Below, piece after piece: positions 327-5,376 of a stretch of DNA of 5,405 nucleotides. Made by a program: the position numbers and the translations under genes. Below the pieces are notes generated by a model. The model worked only from the letters and a program-made list of their open reading frames with translations. It was not told the DNA's origin and ran no database searches. The stretch lies in the IMG/VR virus record IMGVR_UViG_3300022693_000541, positions 1 to 5,405 of that record; one strand, 5' to 3'. Position 1 is the stretch's first letter. Each line of letters starts with the position of its first letter.

Positions 327-1825
327 TGACTACATCCACTATTAAGACGGGTATAGGAGACATCCCCAGTCCTTCAAATTGGGTACACAATACTGAGATG
401 TATCAGACTGTTGGTATTGATGCTACCATACTTCCCATTGAAAAGCAAGATAGTGGTAAGGTTTCTTTAGAAGATATTTCTGATGCCCTTGATGAATATA
501 AACGATTATTTAAAGCGGGAATAGCTTCTAAAGCTGAAATTATTACATTGTCTAGAGCTTATCCAGACTCTACTTTGTACTCTAAAGCTGTCTCTAAACT
601 TAGTGAGGGAGATCCTATGATTTTAGGTGGCCCCGCCTCTGTAGAATTAATTGATAGAGAAGGGCATCTAATCACTACAGTTGCTTTAGAAAAAGCTTTC
701 AAGAAATACATGAATAATTTTCGTACCAGGAATACAATGGTACTACATTCTGATGTTCAAGTTGGATGGGCCTTACCTGCATATATTTCTAAGGGTGGAC
801 AGATATTTAAGTCTGGTGTAGGAGCGGAGGGACTTTTCTTCATTACGGAATTGCGGGATGATACCAAAATTGCCCAACGGGTTATGGATCAAGTTAATGA
901 AGGGAAGCTAAGGAGTTATTCCATTGCGGGAAGTGCAACTAAAACTCAGAATATGCAGAAAGGTTTACAACCTTATATGCAAGTAGACGAAATGGAACTA
1001 GCAGAAGTTACAGTTTGTGAGAAGGGGGTAAACCAAAGTGCTGGGTTTGACATTCTAAAAGCAGAGGGAGCAGTAACTACTTGTATTGATGGTAGTTGCC
1101 TTATGCAGAAACAGGAATGTAATGGTAGTTGCCTTCTCCAGAAAGAAGAAGGTAAAATTACTCAGCTAGACTCAGGCTATAGAAATGCTACGGATGTTGA
1201 AATGCAAAATGGGATTATGTGTGGTACCTGTAAGTTCTTTAATAAACAGGAACAAACATGTGATATAATTGAAGGAATGATTGAAGACCACATGTACTGC
1301 AAAATTTTTGCACCTCTGGATGAATCTCCAACTATTGATGAAGGAAGGGAATTAACTATGTTAATGGAAAAAGCAGATGGGTCAATTGATTTTACTGGGT
1401 CTTTCTTGAACTGGATGAAGAAACAAGGCAAACCTTCCTCGCCAAAAGATATGGCTGGAACCTTTGCAACCCTATTGAATACTGCGGGAAGGGTATCAGA
1501 ACATCATCAATTACTACGGGAGTATGGATTTCCTTCTGAGCAACCTCAAGAAGCCATGCGGTACACTCCAGTAATAGAAACAGAAACAGATGACTTTGGA
1601 ATTCCCATTCATATGAAACCTCCGTGGACTGTTAATGAAGCGGGGTCACATCTGGGAAAGAAATTAGATGCTGATGCTCCTACTTACGATACTTCGTTAG
1701 CTGCTAAGGCTGAGAAGGATTTGCAAACAACTATGCATCCTTGGTATTCGTCAGAAATAAAGGTGGCTTTTCCTATTCGGAAATCGTTTACCAAATGGTT
1801 TCATGATAATGAGTTCTATCTATAA
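326..1825 (+). CDS. Phage prohead (capsid maturation) protease, HK97/peptidase S78-like, with Cys-rich and HiPIP-like C-terminal extensions
   Basis: Residues ~97-246 show the family motifs: ILGGPASVELIDREGHLI, MVLH141SD (His), GKLRSYS199IAG (Ser), ELAE227VTVCEKGVN and FDILKA. GGGGAG RBS at 310-315, TAATG coupling. Confidence 0.85.
   Translation: MTTSTIKTGIGDIPSPSNWVHNTEMYQTVGIDATILPIEKQDSGKVSLEDISDALDEYKRLFKAGIASKAEIITLSRAYPDSTLYSKAVSKLSEGDPMILGGPASVELIDREGHLITTVALEKAFKKYMNNFRTRNTMVLHSDVQVGWALPAYISKGGQIFKSGVGAEGLFFITELRDDTKIAQRVMDQVNEGKLRSYSIAGSATKTQNMQKGLQPYMQVDEMELAEVTVCEKGVNQSAGFDILKAEGAVTTCIDGSCLMQKQECNGSCLLQKEEGKITQLDSGYRNATDVEMQNGIMCGTCKFFNKQEQTCDIIEGMIEDHMYCKIFAPLDESPTIDEGRELTMLMEKADGSIDFTGSFLNWMKKQGKPSSPKDMAGTFATLLNTAGRVSEHHQLLREYGFPSEQPQEAMRYTPVIETETDDFGIPIHMKPPWTVNEAGSHLGKKLDADAPTYDTSLAAKAEKDLQTTMHPWYSSEIKVAFPIRKSFTKWFHDNEFYL
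1082..1150 (+). repeat. In-frame imperfect tandem duplication, 33-nt period, encoding C-(I)-D/N-GSCL-x-QK-x-E twice
   Basis: ATGGTAGTTGCCTT occurs identically at 1089-1102 and 1122-1135. The protein reads CIDGSCLMQKQE / CNGSCLLQKEE. Confidence 0.85.
1154..1315 (+). other. HiPIP-like (high-potential iron-sulfur protein) four-cysteine domain inside the prohead protease ORF
   Basis: Residues 277-330 read K-ITQLDSG-Y285...C299-GT-C302-KFF-x6-C312-DIIEGMI-x4-Y-C325-KIF. This matches the small-HiPIP pattern (upstream Tyr, CxxCxxF, C-x-x-V/I-x-G-x-I, aromatic-C-x-x-aromatic). Confidence 0.65.
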
Positions 1826-1857
1826 TCATAATATGTAATATTCCACGCCTATCAAGG

Positions 1858-1885
1858 TTGACTTTCTCCTTTCTTGGTGTATAAT
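1858..1885 (+). promoter_or_regulatory. sigma70/sigmaA-type promoter
   Basis: TTGACT (1858-1863), 16-nt spacer, TATAAT (1880-1885), intergenic. It is followed by the purine-rich RBS AAGGGGGG (1905-1912) and ATG 1917. Confidence 0.75.
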
Positions 1886-1916
1886 AAAATAACACAAGAA
1901 ATTTAAGGGGGGTCAA

Positions 1917-2111
1917 ATGATAAGTAGTATAATCTTTTTCGGTATTGCAGGACTTGTAATATGTTTAATGGCAATAGTTTATGATAGAGGTAAGTCGGGG
2001 CATTCTGTGGAGTATTACAGATATTTAGAGAATAATAAAGTTCCTCCCCCGTCAGATAAAGACGACAGAATAATTCTTTATAATAACTTATGGGGAGTTA
2101 GGAGAAAGTGA
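1917..2111 (+). CDS. Small membrane-anchored hypothetical protein (64 aa)
   Basis: N-terminal hydrophobic helix IIFFGIAGLVICLMAIVY. RBS and promoter lie upstream, and the stop overlaps the next GTG (GTGA). Confidence 0.75.
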   Translation: MISSIIFFGIAGLVICLMAIVYDRGKSGHSVEYYRYLENNKVPPPSDKDDRIILYNNLWGVRRK

Positions 2112-2260
2112 AGTCTTTGCGCCCACAAATTCTTGTATGTATAATTATCCTAGGTGCTATTGCCATATTTTCTTTGGAATTAGAACATACTGCAATTACT
2201 ACTGGCTGTATAACATTGTTAGGGGCACTGGGAATGAAAATATTGGAGTCGGAAAAGTGA
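2108..2260 (+). CDS. 50-aa two-helix membrane protein (holin-like topology), absent from the ORF track
   Basis: GTG start in a GTGA overlap, with GGGGAG/AGGAG upstream. Translation MKSLRPQILVCIIILGAIAIFSLELEHTAITTGCITLLGALGMKILESEK gives two hydrophobic segments and a charged C-terminus. It tiles exactly between its neighbours. Confidence 0.8.
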   Translation: MKSLRPQILVCIIILGAIAIFSLELEHTAITTGCITLLGALGMKILESEK

Positions 2261-2385
2261 AAAAAAGTTGGGTACGATGTCCAGGTTGTCAACGAAAGCA
2301 ACATGCTAAGACTACTAAATCTGGGACTATGTGTGCCCCTTGTGTTAAACAGGGCAAGACTACTCAGACAGGTAAATTTAGATAA
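2257..2385 (+). CDS. 42-aa basic zinc-finger peptide (CxxC-x14-CxxC)
   Basis: GTG in a GTGA overlap, GGAG at 2245-2248. MKKSWVRCPGCQRKQHAKTTKSGTMCAPCVKQGKTTQTGKFR is the 3' half of track ORF 2137..2385. Confidence 0.75.
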   Translation: MKKSWVRCPGCQRKQHAKTTKSGTMCAPCVKQGKTTQTGKFR

Positions 2386-2400
2386 CTAAGGAGTTCTATA

Positions 2401-2589
2401 ATGGCAGAATGTGTTTGTGATGTTAATGCCTATGCGCTACAAGGTATCTGTGAATGTGAAGGAGAGTGTCCATGTGAGTGTGAAGTATGTGAGTGTGAAC
2501 AGGTTAATCTGTGGTCTGTAGATTTAATCGAAGAATGTCCTTGTGGTGATGGACATTGTAGCTGTGGAAAAGCCCCCTATGAAACTTAA
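2401..2589 (+). CDS. Acidic cysteine-rich metallothionein-like protein (62 aa)
   Basis: 13 Cys, all in CxC/CxCxC motifs, 14 Asp/Glu, 1 Lys and 1 His. Strong RBS TAAGGAG at 2387-2393. Confidence 0.7.
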   Translation: MAECVCDVNAYALQGICECEGECPCECEVCECEQVNLWSVDLIEECPCGDGHCSCGKAPYET

Positions 2590-2896
2590 TAGAACATTAC
2601 TTATTAAAGCACTATCCGCAATAATGGCATTCCTAGGTTTCTTCATGAAAAAGGATTTAGCTAGATACACGCTTACTATTACAGATGTAGTAGACGCAGG
2701 GAAAGATTCGGGAATGACTGTGTTATCAATTATAGATGCCATGAAAGACCGTAAGTTAAGCCCTGAAGAAACTTTAGAGTTAGCAGAAAGATTGACTTCT
2801 AATAAAAGAAGTTTAGATAAAGCTCTTACTACTCTCATTAAAGATCTGAAAGATCATGCAATTGAAAAAACAAAGGGGGGGAATGAAGATGCTTGA
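2579..2896 (+). CDS. Hypothetical protein with N-terminal hydrophobic/signal-anchor helix (about 105 aa)
   Basis: ATG 2579 gives MKLNRTLLIKALSAIMAFLGFFMKK and only an 11-nt overlap with the upstream gene. The remainder is helical (DAMKDRKLSPEETLELAERL). The start is uncertain. Confidence 0.7.
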   Translation: MKLNRTLLIKALSAIMAFLGFFMKKDLARYTLTITDVVDAGKDSGMTVLSIIDAMKDRKLSPEETLELAERLTSNKRSLDKALTTLIKDLKDHAIEKTKGGNEDA

Positions 2897-3086
2897 AAGA
2901 CTGGCCCAATTAATAATTAGATTAAAAGAAGTACTTCTTCATGTAGAAGAACGTCAAAAAGAAGCACATGGGAATGAAGCAGAGATAAAAGACTTACACG
3001 CAGAACTAGTTAGTTTAAAGAAAGACCAAGTAGATGCTATGAAAGCACTAGATGAACTAGAAGAGGTCATTAAAAAATGGGTATAG
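2889..3086 (+). CDS. Coiled-coil hypothetical protein (65 aa)
   Basis: The G-run RBS at 2875-2881 is 7 nt before ATG 2889. Heptad-like Leu/Ile pattern, rich in Glu/Lys. Confidence 0.75.
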   Translation: MLERLAQLIIRLKEVLLHVEERQKEAHGNEAEIKDLHAELVSLKKDQVDAMKALDELEEVIKKWV

Positions 3087-3544
3087 TTTATGATAAAATA
3101 GTTAAACTTAAACAGATGTGTACTCCTCCTGATTTAACTGAACCTTTGTTTGAAGCAAACACTGATTGGATAGGCCAAAAATTACGTGATGTAAATATTC
3201 TTAATACGGGAATGCATCATAAACCATTAGACAATAAATATTGGTGTTGCTCTCGATTGGATTTTGATGCTATAATCAAGTGGGATTGGACTGACAATAA
3301 AAAATATATAGCAGAAAAGTATGATTGTGATAATTTTGCCTTTAGTTTTAAAGCTAGAATGGATAGGAGATTTCATTTGAACAACGTGGGCTTGGTGATT
3401 GACTATTCGGGTGGACACGCTTATAATGTGATTGTTTTCTCTGACGGAACTGTGACATTGTTTGAGCCTCAATCAGATAGCTTCCCAATTTTAAATCCAG
3501 TAGCTGGATATTATAGATGTACATCGGGGTTTATAGTAATATGA
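3077..3544 (+). CDS. Papain/transglutaminase-like cysteine peptidase related to the C-terminal domain of Marasmius oreades agglutinin (lectin MOA-related / Agglutinin_C)
   Basis: Motifs D-x-x-Y (LDNKY), Y-x-x-E-x-YDC84DNFA, GGH114AYN and LFE130PQ reproduce the Cys-His-Glu triad arrangement of MOA. GAGGT RBS at 3063-3067. Confidence 0.8.
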   Translation: MGIVYDKIVKLKQMCTPPDLTEPLFEANTDWIGQKLRDVNILNTGMHHKPLDNKYWCCSRLDFDAIIKWDWTDNKKYIAEKYDCDNFAFSFKARMDRRFHLNNVGLVIDYSGGHAYNVIVFSDGTVTLFEPQSDSFPILNPVAGYYRCTSGFIVI

Positions 3545-3783
3545 TGACTAATGATGGTTATAACCAGGAAAAATATACTGAAATACTAGAATCAATACGT
3601 CCTTTTTATCCTAACAATCCTAATAAAGCTTACGCTATTGTTACGGAAAAGATTGGGCCAGTCTTTAATGATGTTCTTATCCAGTTATTGTGGAGGCAAT
3701 TGGATATGGAAAATATAAATACTCGTAGTGTAGAACATACAGTACCTTATCAAGTGATGAAGGGACGTTTTAATATGAATTAG
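3541..3783 (+). CDS. Hypothetical protein (about 80 aa)
   Basis: The ATGA overlap with the upstream stop (3541-3544) favours this start over 3517. No recognisable motif. Confidence 0.65.
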   Translation: MMTNDGYNQEKYTEILESIRPFYPNNPNKAYAIVTEKIGPVFNDVLIQLLWRQLDMENINTRSVEHTVPYQVMKGRFNMN

Positions 3784-3785
3784 GA

Positions 3786-3858
3786 ACTCCCAAACCGAGA
3801 TGAGGGAGTAAGGAGGTGATCCAGTTTCACCTAGGGGGCATCTGAAAATGATGCCCCC
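3786..3858 (+). ncRNA. Candidate structured RNA element: three tandem hairpins with a 15-nt complement to the 16S rRNA 3' end
   Basis: Stem 1 is ACTCCC 3786-3791 / GGGAGT 3804-3809. AAGGAGGTGATCCAG lies at 3810-3824. Stem 2 is AGGTGA 3814-3819 / TCACCT 3827-3832. Stem 3 is GGGGGCATC 3834-3842 / GATGCCCCC 3850-3858. Confidence 0.55.
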
Positions 3859-3866
3859 GATTGTTT
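3834..3866 (+). terminator. Possible intrinsic terminator or 3'-protective hairpin
   Basis: Perfect 9-bp GC-rich stem with a 7-nt loop, at the end of a gene cluster and just before a promoter. The U-tract is weak (GATTGTTT). Confidence 0.5.
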
Positions 3867-3893
3867 GACAAGGGGCCAACGTTGTGATAAAGT
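3865..3893 (+). promoter_or_regulatory. sigma70/sigmaA-type promoter with extended -10
   Basis: TTGACA (3865-3870), 17-nt spacer, TAAAGT (3888-3893), preceded by TGTG-n (3883-3887). Confidence 0.75.
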
Positions 3894-3921
3894 AATGGAA
3901 CTGAATTTTTTGGAGGTGACT

Positions 3922-3996
3922 ATGGAAATACAAGATCCTGCGAAAGCCCTATGGATACTAATTGCTTTTGGATTGTTAGCTTCGTTAGTAGTATGA
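3922..3996 (+). CDS. 24-aa single-helix hydrophobic peptide, absent from the ORF track
   Basis: Strong RBS GGAGGTGA at 3912-3919. Translation is MEIQDPAKALWILIAFGLLASLVV. The stop overlaps the next ATG (ATGA 3993-3996). Confidence 0.7.
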   Translation: MEIQDPAKALWILIAFGLLASLVV

Positions 3997-4484: not shown

Positions 4485-5309
4485 ATGAGTTTATCACAGG
4501 CAGAAATTCATGAAAAGATTTTATATCCAGTTACTAAAGTGTTGGCAGGAAATGCAGGGGGAAGTGGGGTTTTAGTATACAGTAAAGAAGACCCCAATAA
4601 ACCAGGCGATTTTATTAATATTGCTTTAACTTGTCAACATGTTATTGATGGTGCTATTAAAGTCTCTGAACAATGGGATAACATTCTTAAGAAGGATGTA
4701 AAATCAGATGTGTTAGAGGAAGTTCGCATTGAAGTCTTTGACTACGATAAGAGTAAAGTAGTGTCGGCTAATTCGACAACGGCTCAAATCATTGCTTACG
4801 ATAAACATCATGACTTAGCCGCTGTTAAACTAAATAATACTAGACCTATGAGAAATGTAGCTACTGTTATACCTAAAGAACCAATAAAAGAACTCCAAGT
4901 AACTGATCCTGTATGGGTTTGTGGATGTTCTTTACTTCATGACCCTTTCCCAAGTCCAGGTAACCTAACATATCTACGTGAAATCATTGACCAGAAAGCA
5001 TACCTGATGCAGAATGCTCCTAGTATATTTGGGAACTCTGGTGGAGGTTTGTTTCACGGAGACACTGGACATCTACTGGGACTAACCTCTAGAATTACTT
5101 CTACCCAACTTGGATTTGGTATAGATATTATGACATGGATGGGATTCAGTACACATCCTGATAGATTATATGAGTTCTTTGAACATCAAGAACTACAGTT
5201 TCTATATGATGATACTGATAATTATTATGATGCTTTGCATCGTAGAGACAGTCGTAGGCATGAAGCTTTACGGAATCTATTGTTTGAATCTAAAGGGGAG
5301 AGTCCTTAG
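4485..5309 (+). CDS. Trypsin-like (clan PA, HtrA/Trypsin_2-type) serine protease without signal peptide or PDZ domain
   Basis: Motifs GSGV, ALTCQH52VI, HD110LAAVKL and GNS185GGGLF. AGGAGG RBS at 4472-4477. Confidence 0.9.
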   Translation: MSLSQAEIHEKILYPVTKVLAGNAGGSGVLVYSKEDPNKPGDFINIALTCQHVIDGAIKVSEQWDNILKKDVKSDVLEEVRIEVFDYDKSKVVSANSTTAQIIAYDKHHDLAAVKLNNTRPMRNVATVIPKEPIKELQVTDPVWVCGCSLLHDPFPSPGNLTYLREIIDQKAYLMQNAPSIFGNSGGGLFHGDTGHLLGLTSRITSTQLGFGIDIMTWMGFSTHPDRLYEFFEHQELQFLYDDTDNYYDALHRRDSRRHEALRNLLFESKGESP

Positions 5310-5347: not shown

Positions 5348-5376
5348 TTGACATGCTTGTGCGATTCGGTTATTGT
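5348..5376 (+). promoter_or_regulatory. Probable sigma70-type promoter for a downstream unit
   Basis: TTGACA (5348-5353), 17-nt spacer, TATTGT (5371-5376), intergenic. Confidence 0.6.

Follow-up and report, generated by a model that had tools for sequence, protein, structure and literature searches.

Shine-Dalgarno (SD) elements that work independently of translation are known from a handful of 5' leaders of Gram-positive bacteria. The STAB-SD of cry3A was reportedly described by Agaisse and Lereclus in 1996. A polypurine 5' stabilizer of SP82, attributed to Hue, Cohen and Bechhofer in 1995, is said to be phage-borne and to lie between genes, as does the element analyzed here, and a stabilizer in the 5' untranslated region (UTR) of ompA was reportedly studied by Arnold, Yu and Belasco in 1998. 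In Bacillus thuringiensis, the STAB-SD of cry3A is located ∼125 nucleotides (nt) upstream of the start codon within a longer primary transcript, binds the 30S subunit without initiating translation and blocks RNase J1 (PMC4113751). Scanning by RNase E in E. coli is hindered by ribosomes bound to the 5' UTR, and this hindrance rises with the strength of the SD and with the time for which the ribosome persists there (PMC9943677). The limiting case of such an obstacle would be an SD of maximal strength that lacks a start codon. Here we analyze a candidate for this limiting case, a start-less ('orphan') SD within a cassette of three hairpins at positions 3786–3858 of the IMG/VR viral contig IMGVR_UViG_3300022693_000541, in which a complement of the full free 16S rRNA tail is kept nearly unchanged while its surroundings drift. 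The window, i.e. the whole stretch of DNA that was analyzed, is the complete contig of 5,405 bp; every gene is on the plus strand, to which the coordinates refer.

The phage element resembles the STAB-SD in being an SD-like sequence that is complementary to the 3' end of 16S rRNA and has no usable start codon (PMC4113751). In both, a distance of ∼110–130 nt separates the sequence from the next real start downstream (110 nt between the orphan SD and ATG 3922), and the sequence is located within a longer transcript, in the phage provided that transcription reads through, and for both a 30S roadblock against 5'-to-3' decay is the proposal. The differences are in the length, which is 14–16 nt and covers the whole free tail up to helix 45 in the phage as compared to ∼9 nt in the STAB-SD; in the masking of half of the sequence by its own anti-SD-like arm; in the conserved flanking hairpins, which make it part of a fixed three-hairpin cassette; in the position directly after a stop codon, with a GC hairpin and a promoter following at once; and in the source, a lineage of uncultured marine phages. 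In addition, the T that is preferred before AAGGAGG fits a tail ending in ...CCUCCUUA-3', as in E. coli, and not the Bacillus-type ...UUUCU. The obstacles to RNase E and the ompA stabilizer share with the phage element a hairpin that precedes a strong ribosome-binding site, and their protection scales with 16S complementarity and ribosome residence (PMC9943677); these are genuine initiation sites or upstream open reading frames (ORFs) in E. coli 5' UTRs, whereas the phage element has no ORF and is located between operons. In the literature searched, the DNA string was found only as a 16S reverse primer and the RNA string only in work on YbeY, on SD selection and on decoding, the string serving as a primer or a laboratory oligonucleotide; no natural start-less element of this kind was described.

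For comparison, 60 related loci were fetched from viral contigs via two flanking proteins, those encoded by the 155-amino-acid (aa) ORF at 3077–3544 and the trypsin-like ORF at 4485–5309. The comparisons rest on 17 distinct versions of the cassette, and identities are mean pairwise values. The 15-mer AAGGAGGTGATCCAG at 3810–3824 has one exact match in the window, where 0.19 matches with up to three mismatches would be expected by chance; the string GGAGGTGATC occupies the same position in close relatives. In the alignment, a near-invariant block of 16 nt, AGTAAGGAGGTGATCC (3807–3822), stands out with an identity of 98.5%. The TCACC further downstream is 95% identical and the arms of hairpin 3 are 87–94% identical; the values drop to 63% for the end of the upstream ORF, 55% over 3823–3826, 53% for the start of the downstream ORF, 48% for the 5' arm of hairpin 1, 43.5% for the 17-nt spacer of the promoter and 35% for the loop of hairpin 1. 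The constraint on the block is thus far above that on the surrounding coding sequence (98.5% versus 53–63%).

Bases 3809–3822 of the block (TAAGGAGGTGATCC) are the exact complement of GGAUCACCUCCUUA, which corresponds to the free 3' tail of E. coli 16S rRNA (positions 1529–1542), and can form 14 contiguous Watson-Crick pairs with it. Only two substitutions were found in the block, A to G in one variant (L017) and C to T in another (L006), and both are compatible with the 16S tail through G·U pairing. A preliminary description of this DNA, made from the letters alone, had reported a perfect 15-nt complement of the 16S 3' end, as the window indeed has, and had assigned to its GATCCAG part a reach into the base of helix 45. 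GATCC is conserved; the AG at 3823–3824, the final two bases of the 15-mer and the ones that would pair into helix 45, is specific to this contig. GATC is followed by CAG in the window and by CAC, CAT, CTG, CAA or CGT in the relatives, and conservation thus ends at the boundary of helix 45, where the free 16S tail ends. Overall, the comparison of variants supports complementarity to the 16S 3' tail as the property under selection.

The block is embedded in collinear flanks on contigs from at least ten IMG samples and in TARA, ENA and NCBI assemblies. Pattern scans, which covered viral, metagenome and genome collections, yielded extra family members from TARA, ENA, JGI and one NCBI assembly; outside the lineage, the patterns (those combining the block with TCACC and those built on the flanks) gave only chance matches in GC-rich coding DNA of these collections. 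A scan blind to the block, using TCACC and hairpin 3 only, recovered 13 family contigs, and the block was present in 13 out of 13. A covariance model of the cassette, trained on ten copies, found one cassette per locus, including the two copies with an altered block, and gave no convincing match beyond the cassette loci; in up to 21 kb examined the cassette is single-copy. A nucleotide search of 50,697 phage records gave no match to the window, and Rfam scans of the window, even at a permissive threshold, revealed no rRNA, riboswitch or ribozyme and placed the element in no family. The search outside rRNA loci that the preliminary description had proposed thus traced the cassette to 17 variants of one phage lineage. 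Given its occurrence in these variants and in many independent metagenomes, the cassette is neither a chance match nor an artefact. A primer- or rRNA-derived assembly artefact in particular is ruled out by the collinear flanks in many independent shotgun assemblies and by the differing bases past GATCC.

The minimum-free-energy fold of 3781–3870 consists of three hairpins (−36.2 kcal/mol, z = −4.0; none of 200 shuffled sequences was as stable), in agreement with the element of flanking 6-bp and 9-bp hairpins proposed earlier. Hairpin 1 (3786–3809) pairs ACTCCC (3786–3791) with GGGAGT (3804–3809). Its stem of 6 bp is extended to 7 bp in most relatives, and its loop varies from 5 to 12 nt. Among the 17 distinct sequences, four out of seven pairs have changed on both sides, U·G pairs occur in addition, and 97.5% of the alignment cells are paired; the ACT/AGT base of this hairpin is also conserved in sequence. 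The covariation check suggested in the preliminary description thus came out in favor of the stem. Over the whole structure 99.2% of the cells are paired, and none of 500 shuffles matched the observed pairing or covariation, a statistic that ignores the relatedness of the sequences and is therefore supportive rather than a formal test.

Hairpin 2 (3814–3832), seen in the fold and in the unpaired probabilities, pairs AGGTGA (3814–3819) with TCACCT (3827–3832) across a loop of 7 nt, so that the orphan SD is masked over its 3' half, the partial masking by TCACCT having been noted before. The predicted fold leaves AAGG (3810–3813) unpaired and exposed as a toehold, with GGTGA hidden in the weak hairpin 2. 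Covariation is impossible here, since the match to rRNA leaves the 5' arm no freedom to change. The 3' arm is invariant while the loop changes in sequence and length (6–9 nt), and this is the pattern expected of a selected hairpin. Hairpin 3 (3834–3858) pairs GGGGGCATC (3834–3842) with GATGCCCCC (3850–3858) in 9 bp, seven of which are G-C, around the loop TGAAAAT. It is a perfect palindrome, and 100% of the cells are paired in the 17 variants. Many G·U pairs are found in hairpin 3, and on the plus strand only: the non-Watson-Crick pairs of hairpins 1 and 3 are G·U when read on the plus strand and A·C when read on the minus strand. This signature points to a plus-strand RNA. An RNA of the minus strand, or a mimic of 16S rRNA itself, was rejected, as the G·U pairs would turn into A·C mismatches. 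Taken together, the sequence comparisons support the view that the element is a conserved, structured RNA module of the plus strand.

The preliminary description had called the stem next to the SD terminator-like, and for the window the label is apt, five of the 8 nt after hairpin 3 being T. Such a tail is present in only two of the 17 variants (the window and L023), and the other 15 have 2–4 T (just two in nine of the 17). T-rich tails do follow other hairpins in the same phages. Without a U-tract in most variants, hairpin 3 is probably a weak intrinsic terminator at best, and read-through is plausible. The gap between hairpins 2 and 3 is 1–3 nt in most variants. Two loci deviate: L086 (377–480) has an insertion of ∼23 nt between these hairpins, an extra small hairpin and a longer hairpin 3, and L080 (4523–4596) has an insertion of 8 nt at the same place. 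The spacing of hairpins 2 and 3 is therefore not strictly fixed.

The start codon reported missing at normal spacing is indeed absent: there is no ATG, GTG or TTG 4–12 nt after GGAGG in the window, and the first ATGs downstream of the block are those in the hairpin 3 loop. On the plus strand, two frames run into a stop within the block (TAA and TGA), and the remaining one closes within 7–20 codons. A conserved ORF was sought on both strands in the 17 variants and none was found, the finding of which had been named beforehand as evidence against an untranslated element. An ordinary ribosome-binding site was rejected, as no start codon 4–10 nt downstream opens a conserved ORF. The spacer is either 3 or 4 nt long among the variants. 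A minus-strand frame at 3685–3933 (82 aa), open in many variants, was also rejected: it is interrupted in L002, L019 and L086, and the 3- or 4-nt spacer shifts the frame of its upstream part.

The predicted duplex of the orphan block and the 16S tail has a free energy of −24.5 to −26.2 kcal/mol, as compared to −8.6 to −15 kcal/mol for the genuine ribosome-binding sites of the window and −18.1 kcal/mol for the strongest genuine SD in the relatives (TAAGGAGGTGA, followed by ATG). The family has 410 distinct GGAGG contexts, and the orphan is the only one in which the match continues for at least 6 nt on the 3' side of GGAGG.

The borders of the cassette are also constant. The stop codon of the upstream ORF is found 0–3 nt before hairpin 1 in all variants, whichever ORF is present; in the window, the ORF of ∼75–88 aa at 3517–3783 ends with TAG (3781–3783), 2 nt before the hairpin. 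As the ORF preceding the cassette, 14 of the 17 variants have a homologue of 75 aa, and the other three have the 155-aa ORF. A conserved AU-rich, single-stranded stretch, TTTAATATGAATTAG, adjoins hairpin 1 on its 5' side. Where the 75-aa ORF is missing, its last ∼18 nt (TTTAATATGACTTAG) persist in L074 (850–890) and in part in L002 (5462–5490). Because of this retention, the AU-rich stretch may belong to the element, possibly as an entry site for an endonuclease. A promoter of the cassette itself at this place (TAATAT in the window, TGATATAAT in L002) was considered and rejected, its position relative to hairpin 1 being inconsistent. On the 3' side, a sigma-70-type promoter for the downstream operon follows hairpin 3 directly (3865–3893; TTGACA-N17-TAAAGT, the −10 hexamer being preceded by TG). 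Both hexamers have been retained despite the divergence of the spacer, and in L018 the promoter is displaced as a whole by ∼25 nt, which marks it as a real sigma-70 promoter. Because this conserved promoter follows hairpin 3, the label '3' UTR' given to the site in the preliminary description is uncertain.

What the cassette does can be proposed with some caution. We consider it roughly 40% probable that it is a docking site for 30S subunits of the STAB-SD type, independent of translation, which serves as a roadblock to RNases at the junction of two phage operons. The cassette would be a cis-acting RNA that pairs with the whole single-stranded 16S tail without initiation. Pairing with the 16S tail, supplied by a free 30S subunit or by a ribosome immediately after termination, would nucleate at the AAGG toehold (3810–3813) and then displace the weak hairpin 2. 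Since there is no start codon, the docked subunit could not leave by elongation and would stay as a persistent roadblock. Together with hairpin 1 on its 5' side, the bound subunit would stop nucleases that work in the 5'-to-3' direction (RNase E in its scanning mode, or RNase J if the host has one), and read-through transcripts bearing the downstream operon would be protected. Hairpins 3 and 2 would block 3' exonucleases, by which the upstream operon would be protected. The net effect would be a two-way insulator against decay of the STAB-SD kind. For this scheme we infer binding of the 30S subunit, read-through of hairpin 3 and an effect of the cassette on RNA stability. It is the most economical reading, because it draws on two documented mechanisms, the STAB-SD of cry3A and the obstacles to RNase E scanning. 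Of the three functions put forward in the preliminary description (a ribosome sponge for host shut-off, an RNA stabilizer and a ribosome-sensing switch on the adjacent stem), the RNA stabilizer fits the known mechanisms best (PMC4113751, PMC9943677). If true, phages would use parked ribosomal subunits to insulate neighboring operons from each other's decay, and the cassette would be a compact, portable stabilizer part.

Several observations weigh against such a roadblock. With a conserved promoter directly 3' of hairpin 3, the downstream operon needs no read-through, and the transcripts from this promoter do not carry the element. In the window and L023, with five T in 8 nt, hairpin 3 may terminate efficiently, in which case there would be nothing downstream to protect. 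The identity of 87–94% in the stem of hairpin 3 is beyond the need of a plain protective hairpin and is not explained by a roadblock. The opening of the structure is estimated to cost ∼11 kcal/mol, which brings the net affinity for the 16S tail to ∼−15 kcal/mol, a value that a good ordinary SD also reaches. Finally, an SD helix of 13–14 bp that reaches G1529/G1530 may be strained within the assembled 30S subunit.

The roadblock has to be weighed against an RNA of ∼75–80 nt that acts in trans, is excised from the 3' end of the operon or ends at hairpin 3, and binds anti-SD tails. Its targets could be host 30S subunits or 16S precursors, and it could be a ribosome decoy or sponge that shifts initiation, or interfere with maturation of the 16S 3' end. 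The compact and very stable fold (−36 kcal/mol, z = −4) with its toehold and masked seed would suit such an RNA; so would the complementarity, which far exceeds the needs of initiation, and the stretch TTTAATATGAATTAG 5' of hairpin 1, partly kept in L074, which resembles an endonuclease entry site. Yet masking of anti-SD tails would harm the phage as well, because its own genes all rely on strong SDs; moreover, most variants lack the U-tail typical of Hfq-dependent small RNAs (sRNAs) derived from 3' UTRs, and there is a single copy in each genome region examined. We consider this possibility unlikely. Slightly more doubtful is its most specific form, a dedicated ribosome-capturing RNA, that is, a decoy that would titrate or mark host 30S subunits or immature 16S 3' ends and in which the masking hairpin would be a toehold-gated switch. 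If true, action in trans would be a previously undescribed viral control of bacterial translation and host ribosomes, by RNA and not by protein.

Control by ribosome sensing, in which a 30S subunit on the nascent orphan SD would alter the formation of hairpins 2 and 3 and thus set termination against read-through according to the supply of free ribosomes, receives a slightly lower estimate. The layout is suggestive, with the SD, the masking hairpin and hairpin 3 within 50 nt and a gap of 1–3 nt between the latter two in most variants; the sequence of hairpin 3 is unusually conserved, and a weak U-tract is found in the type of terminator that relies on auxiliary inputs. In the folds, however, neither arm of hairpin 3 has an evident alternative (anti-terminator) partner, and the insertions of 8–23 nt in L080 and L086 would loosen any steric coupling. 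The promoter immediately 3' limits the value of read-through control, and a 30S subunit that is held by the SD alone need not thread the downstream RNA.

The abutment of the upstream stop codon on hairpin 1 in every variant is what one would expect if ribosomes finishing the last ORF melted hairpin 1, slid on and were caught by the orphan SD, and the stops in two frames of the block, with closure of the third within 7–20 codons, are in line with this. The outcome would be parked ribosomes for local re-use, shielding of the 3' end, or the prevention of spurious re-initiation. However, stops close to hairpins are common in compact phage genomes, we know of no system that captures post-termination ribosomes in this way, and the gain from it is not obvious, so that we regard such capture as improbable.

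No better is the chance that the likeness to an SD is secondary and that the block and the stem of hairpin 3 are a protein site on RNA or DNA, for instance for an endoribonuclease or repressor that reads GGAG or SD-like RNA, or as a palindromic operator centered ∼54 bp before the start site of transcription. A conserved perfect palindrome just 5' of a conserved promoter would be in keeping with an operator, and both TCACC and the ACT/AGT base of hairpin 1 are conserved in sequence. Against this, the block matches the free 16S tail base for base and ends where the tail ends, and both of its substitutions are wobble-compatible. Where the stems deviate from Watson-Crick pairing, the plus strand has G·U and not A·C, which indicates RNA and not DNA, and in L018 the promoter has moved by 25 nt relative to hairpin 3.

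The last group of explanations is largely refuted and has a very small residual probability: a short ORF with a non-standard start (ATT, CTG or ATC), of which ATT or CTG is present 6 nt past GGAGGTGATCC in some variants, but with no near-cognate start common to all variants and with differing frames; the artefact excluded above, raised because the 15-mer, a string found in 986 papers, is the start of the universal 16S reverse primer; and an attachment site at the 16S end, the minus strand being the end of the 16S gene, against which speak the absence of an integrase family in the 21-kb locus L087, for which 43 genes were called, the variant copies in L006 and L017 that break the identity to 16S, and the RNA-type G·U signature of the stems.

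A switch on the downstream ribosome-binding site by freed TCACC was tried separately and rejected: in silico blocking of the SD altered the accessibility in only two out of 16 variants, and conservation of the pairing is lacking.

Three other known systems share some of the features of the cassette. The PeSL cassettes of T4-type phages consist of a stem-loop followed by a sigma-70 early-type promoter and are found at the boundaries of small-gene modules with varying neighbors. The phage cassette is similar in its stem-loop, adjoining sigma-70 promoter and location at the boundary of a small-gene module; the PeSL cassettes differ in having many copies per genome and no known rRNA-complementary block. 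A repeated cassette of the PeSL kind was rejected, since no locus, over up to 21 kb, had more than the single copy detected by the covariance model. Plant RNA viruses have 3' cap-independent translation elements that are untranslated, structured and complementary to 18S rRNA. These are likewise viral, untranslated, near the end of a coding block and complementary to rRNA of the small subunit, but they are eukaryotic, work by another mechanism and have no homology to the phage element, so that the likeness is an analogy only.

The Rfam check proposed in the preliminary description returned only a sub-threshold match to RF01867, the Caulobacter sRNA CC2171, which starts with GAAAGGAGGUGAUCCAGU and ends in a GC hairpin. 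The match to the window scored 24.2 bits against a gathering score of 75 (E = 0.037), and 100 of the 159 model positions were absent. The consensus of RF01867 opens with GAAAGGAGGUGAUCCAGUG, i.e. the same complement of the full tail, followed by GUG at normal spacing. The string in CC2171 is probably a real ribosome-binding site, and because of the GUG at normal spacing this 'sRNA' may be the message for a small protein whose SD is extreme.

Downstream of the cassette, the genuine ribosome-binding site GGAGGTGA (3911–3918) precedes ATG 3922, the start of an ORF for a hydrophobic peptide of 24 aa (3922–3996) that is the constant downstream neighbor of the cassette. In nearly all variants a peptide ORF of 23–28 aa of the MxIxxPxK...W type with its own GGAGGTG site is found 3' of the cassette. 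In size and composition these peptides resemble small membrane peptides or type I toxin-like ORFs. Two further sigma-70-type promoters were observed at 1858–1885 (TTGACT-N16-TATAAT) and 5348–5376 (TTGACA-N17-TATTGT), and the three promoters divide the window into short plus-strand operons. They suggest that the host is bacterial and that its own polymerase transcribes these genes.

The gene order in the 21-kb locus L087 is capsid, a 307-aa ORF, protease, small ORFs, cassette, the tiny hydrophobic ORF and the trypsin-like protease. In the window, a protein of 499 aa with a prohead-protease domain, assigned by a domain match, is encoded at 326–1825; it has a long C-terminal extension with a duplicated Cys-rich stretch, 'DGSCLMQKQECNGSCLLQKEE'. 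The cultured relatives of the prohead protease and of the SU10-type capsid (L087 8151–9491) are only Haloarcula tailed viruses and one Methanofastidiosa virus, at 25–34% identity. Relatives among haloarchaeal viruses are odd beside promoters of the bacterial type. The trypsin-like serine protease (4485–5309; Pfam Trypsin_2, E = 5e-11) is the best-conserved gene of the neighborhood. Its identity is 85–94% in close relatives and 50–100% across the 44 distinct viral loci in which it was detected, and a comparison with proteins of cultured phages gave no match. The 155-aa ORF (3077–3544) matches the ricin-type lectin/agglutinin C-terminal domains PF18022 (E = 2e-9) and PF18021 and, faintly, a papain-fold glutamine deamidase; it has no PHROG match.

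Small Cys-rich ORFs are located at 2401–2589 and 2260–2385, with CxC/CxxC runs such as 'CECEGECPCECEVCECE' and a zinc-ribbon-like ORF. In more distant relatives, the homologue of this Cys-rich ORF type is found directly 3' of a canonical terminator, a TATAAT box and the 11-nt SD TAAGGAGGTGA. tRNA genes were sought in nine loci and none were found. The locus L087 is part of a 71-kb relative, NCBI VTLG01000513.1. At 1299–3345 and 18353–19156 of L087, glyoxalase-family, glutamate/Leu/Phe/Val dehydrogenase and Mom-like genes are located near the structural module; these are probably auxiliary metabolic and DNA-modification genes.

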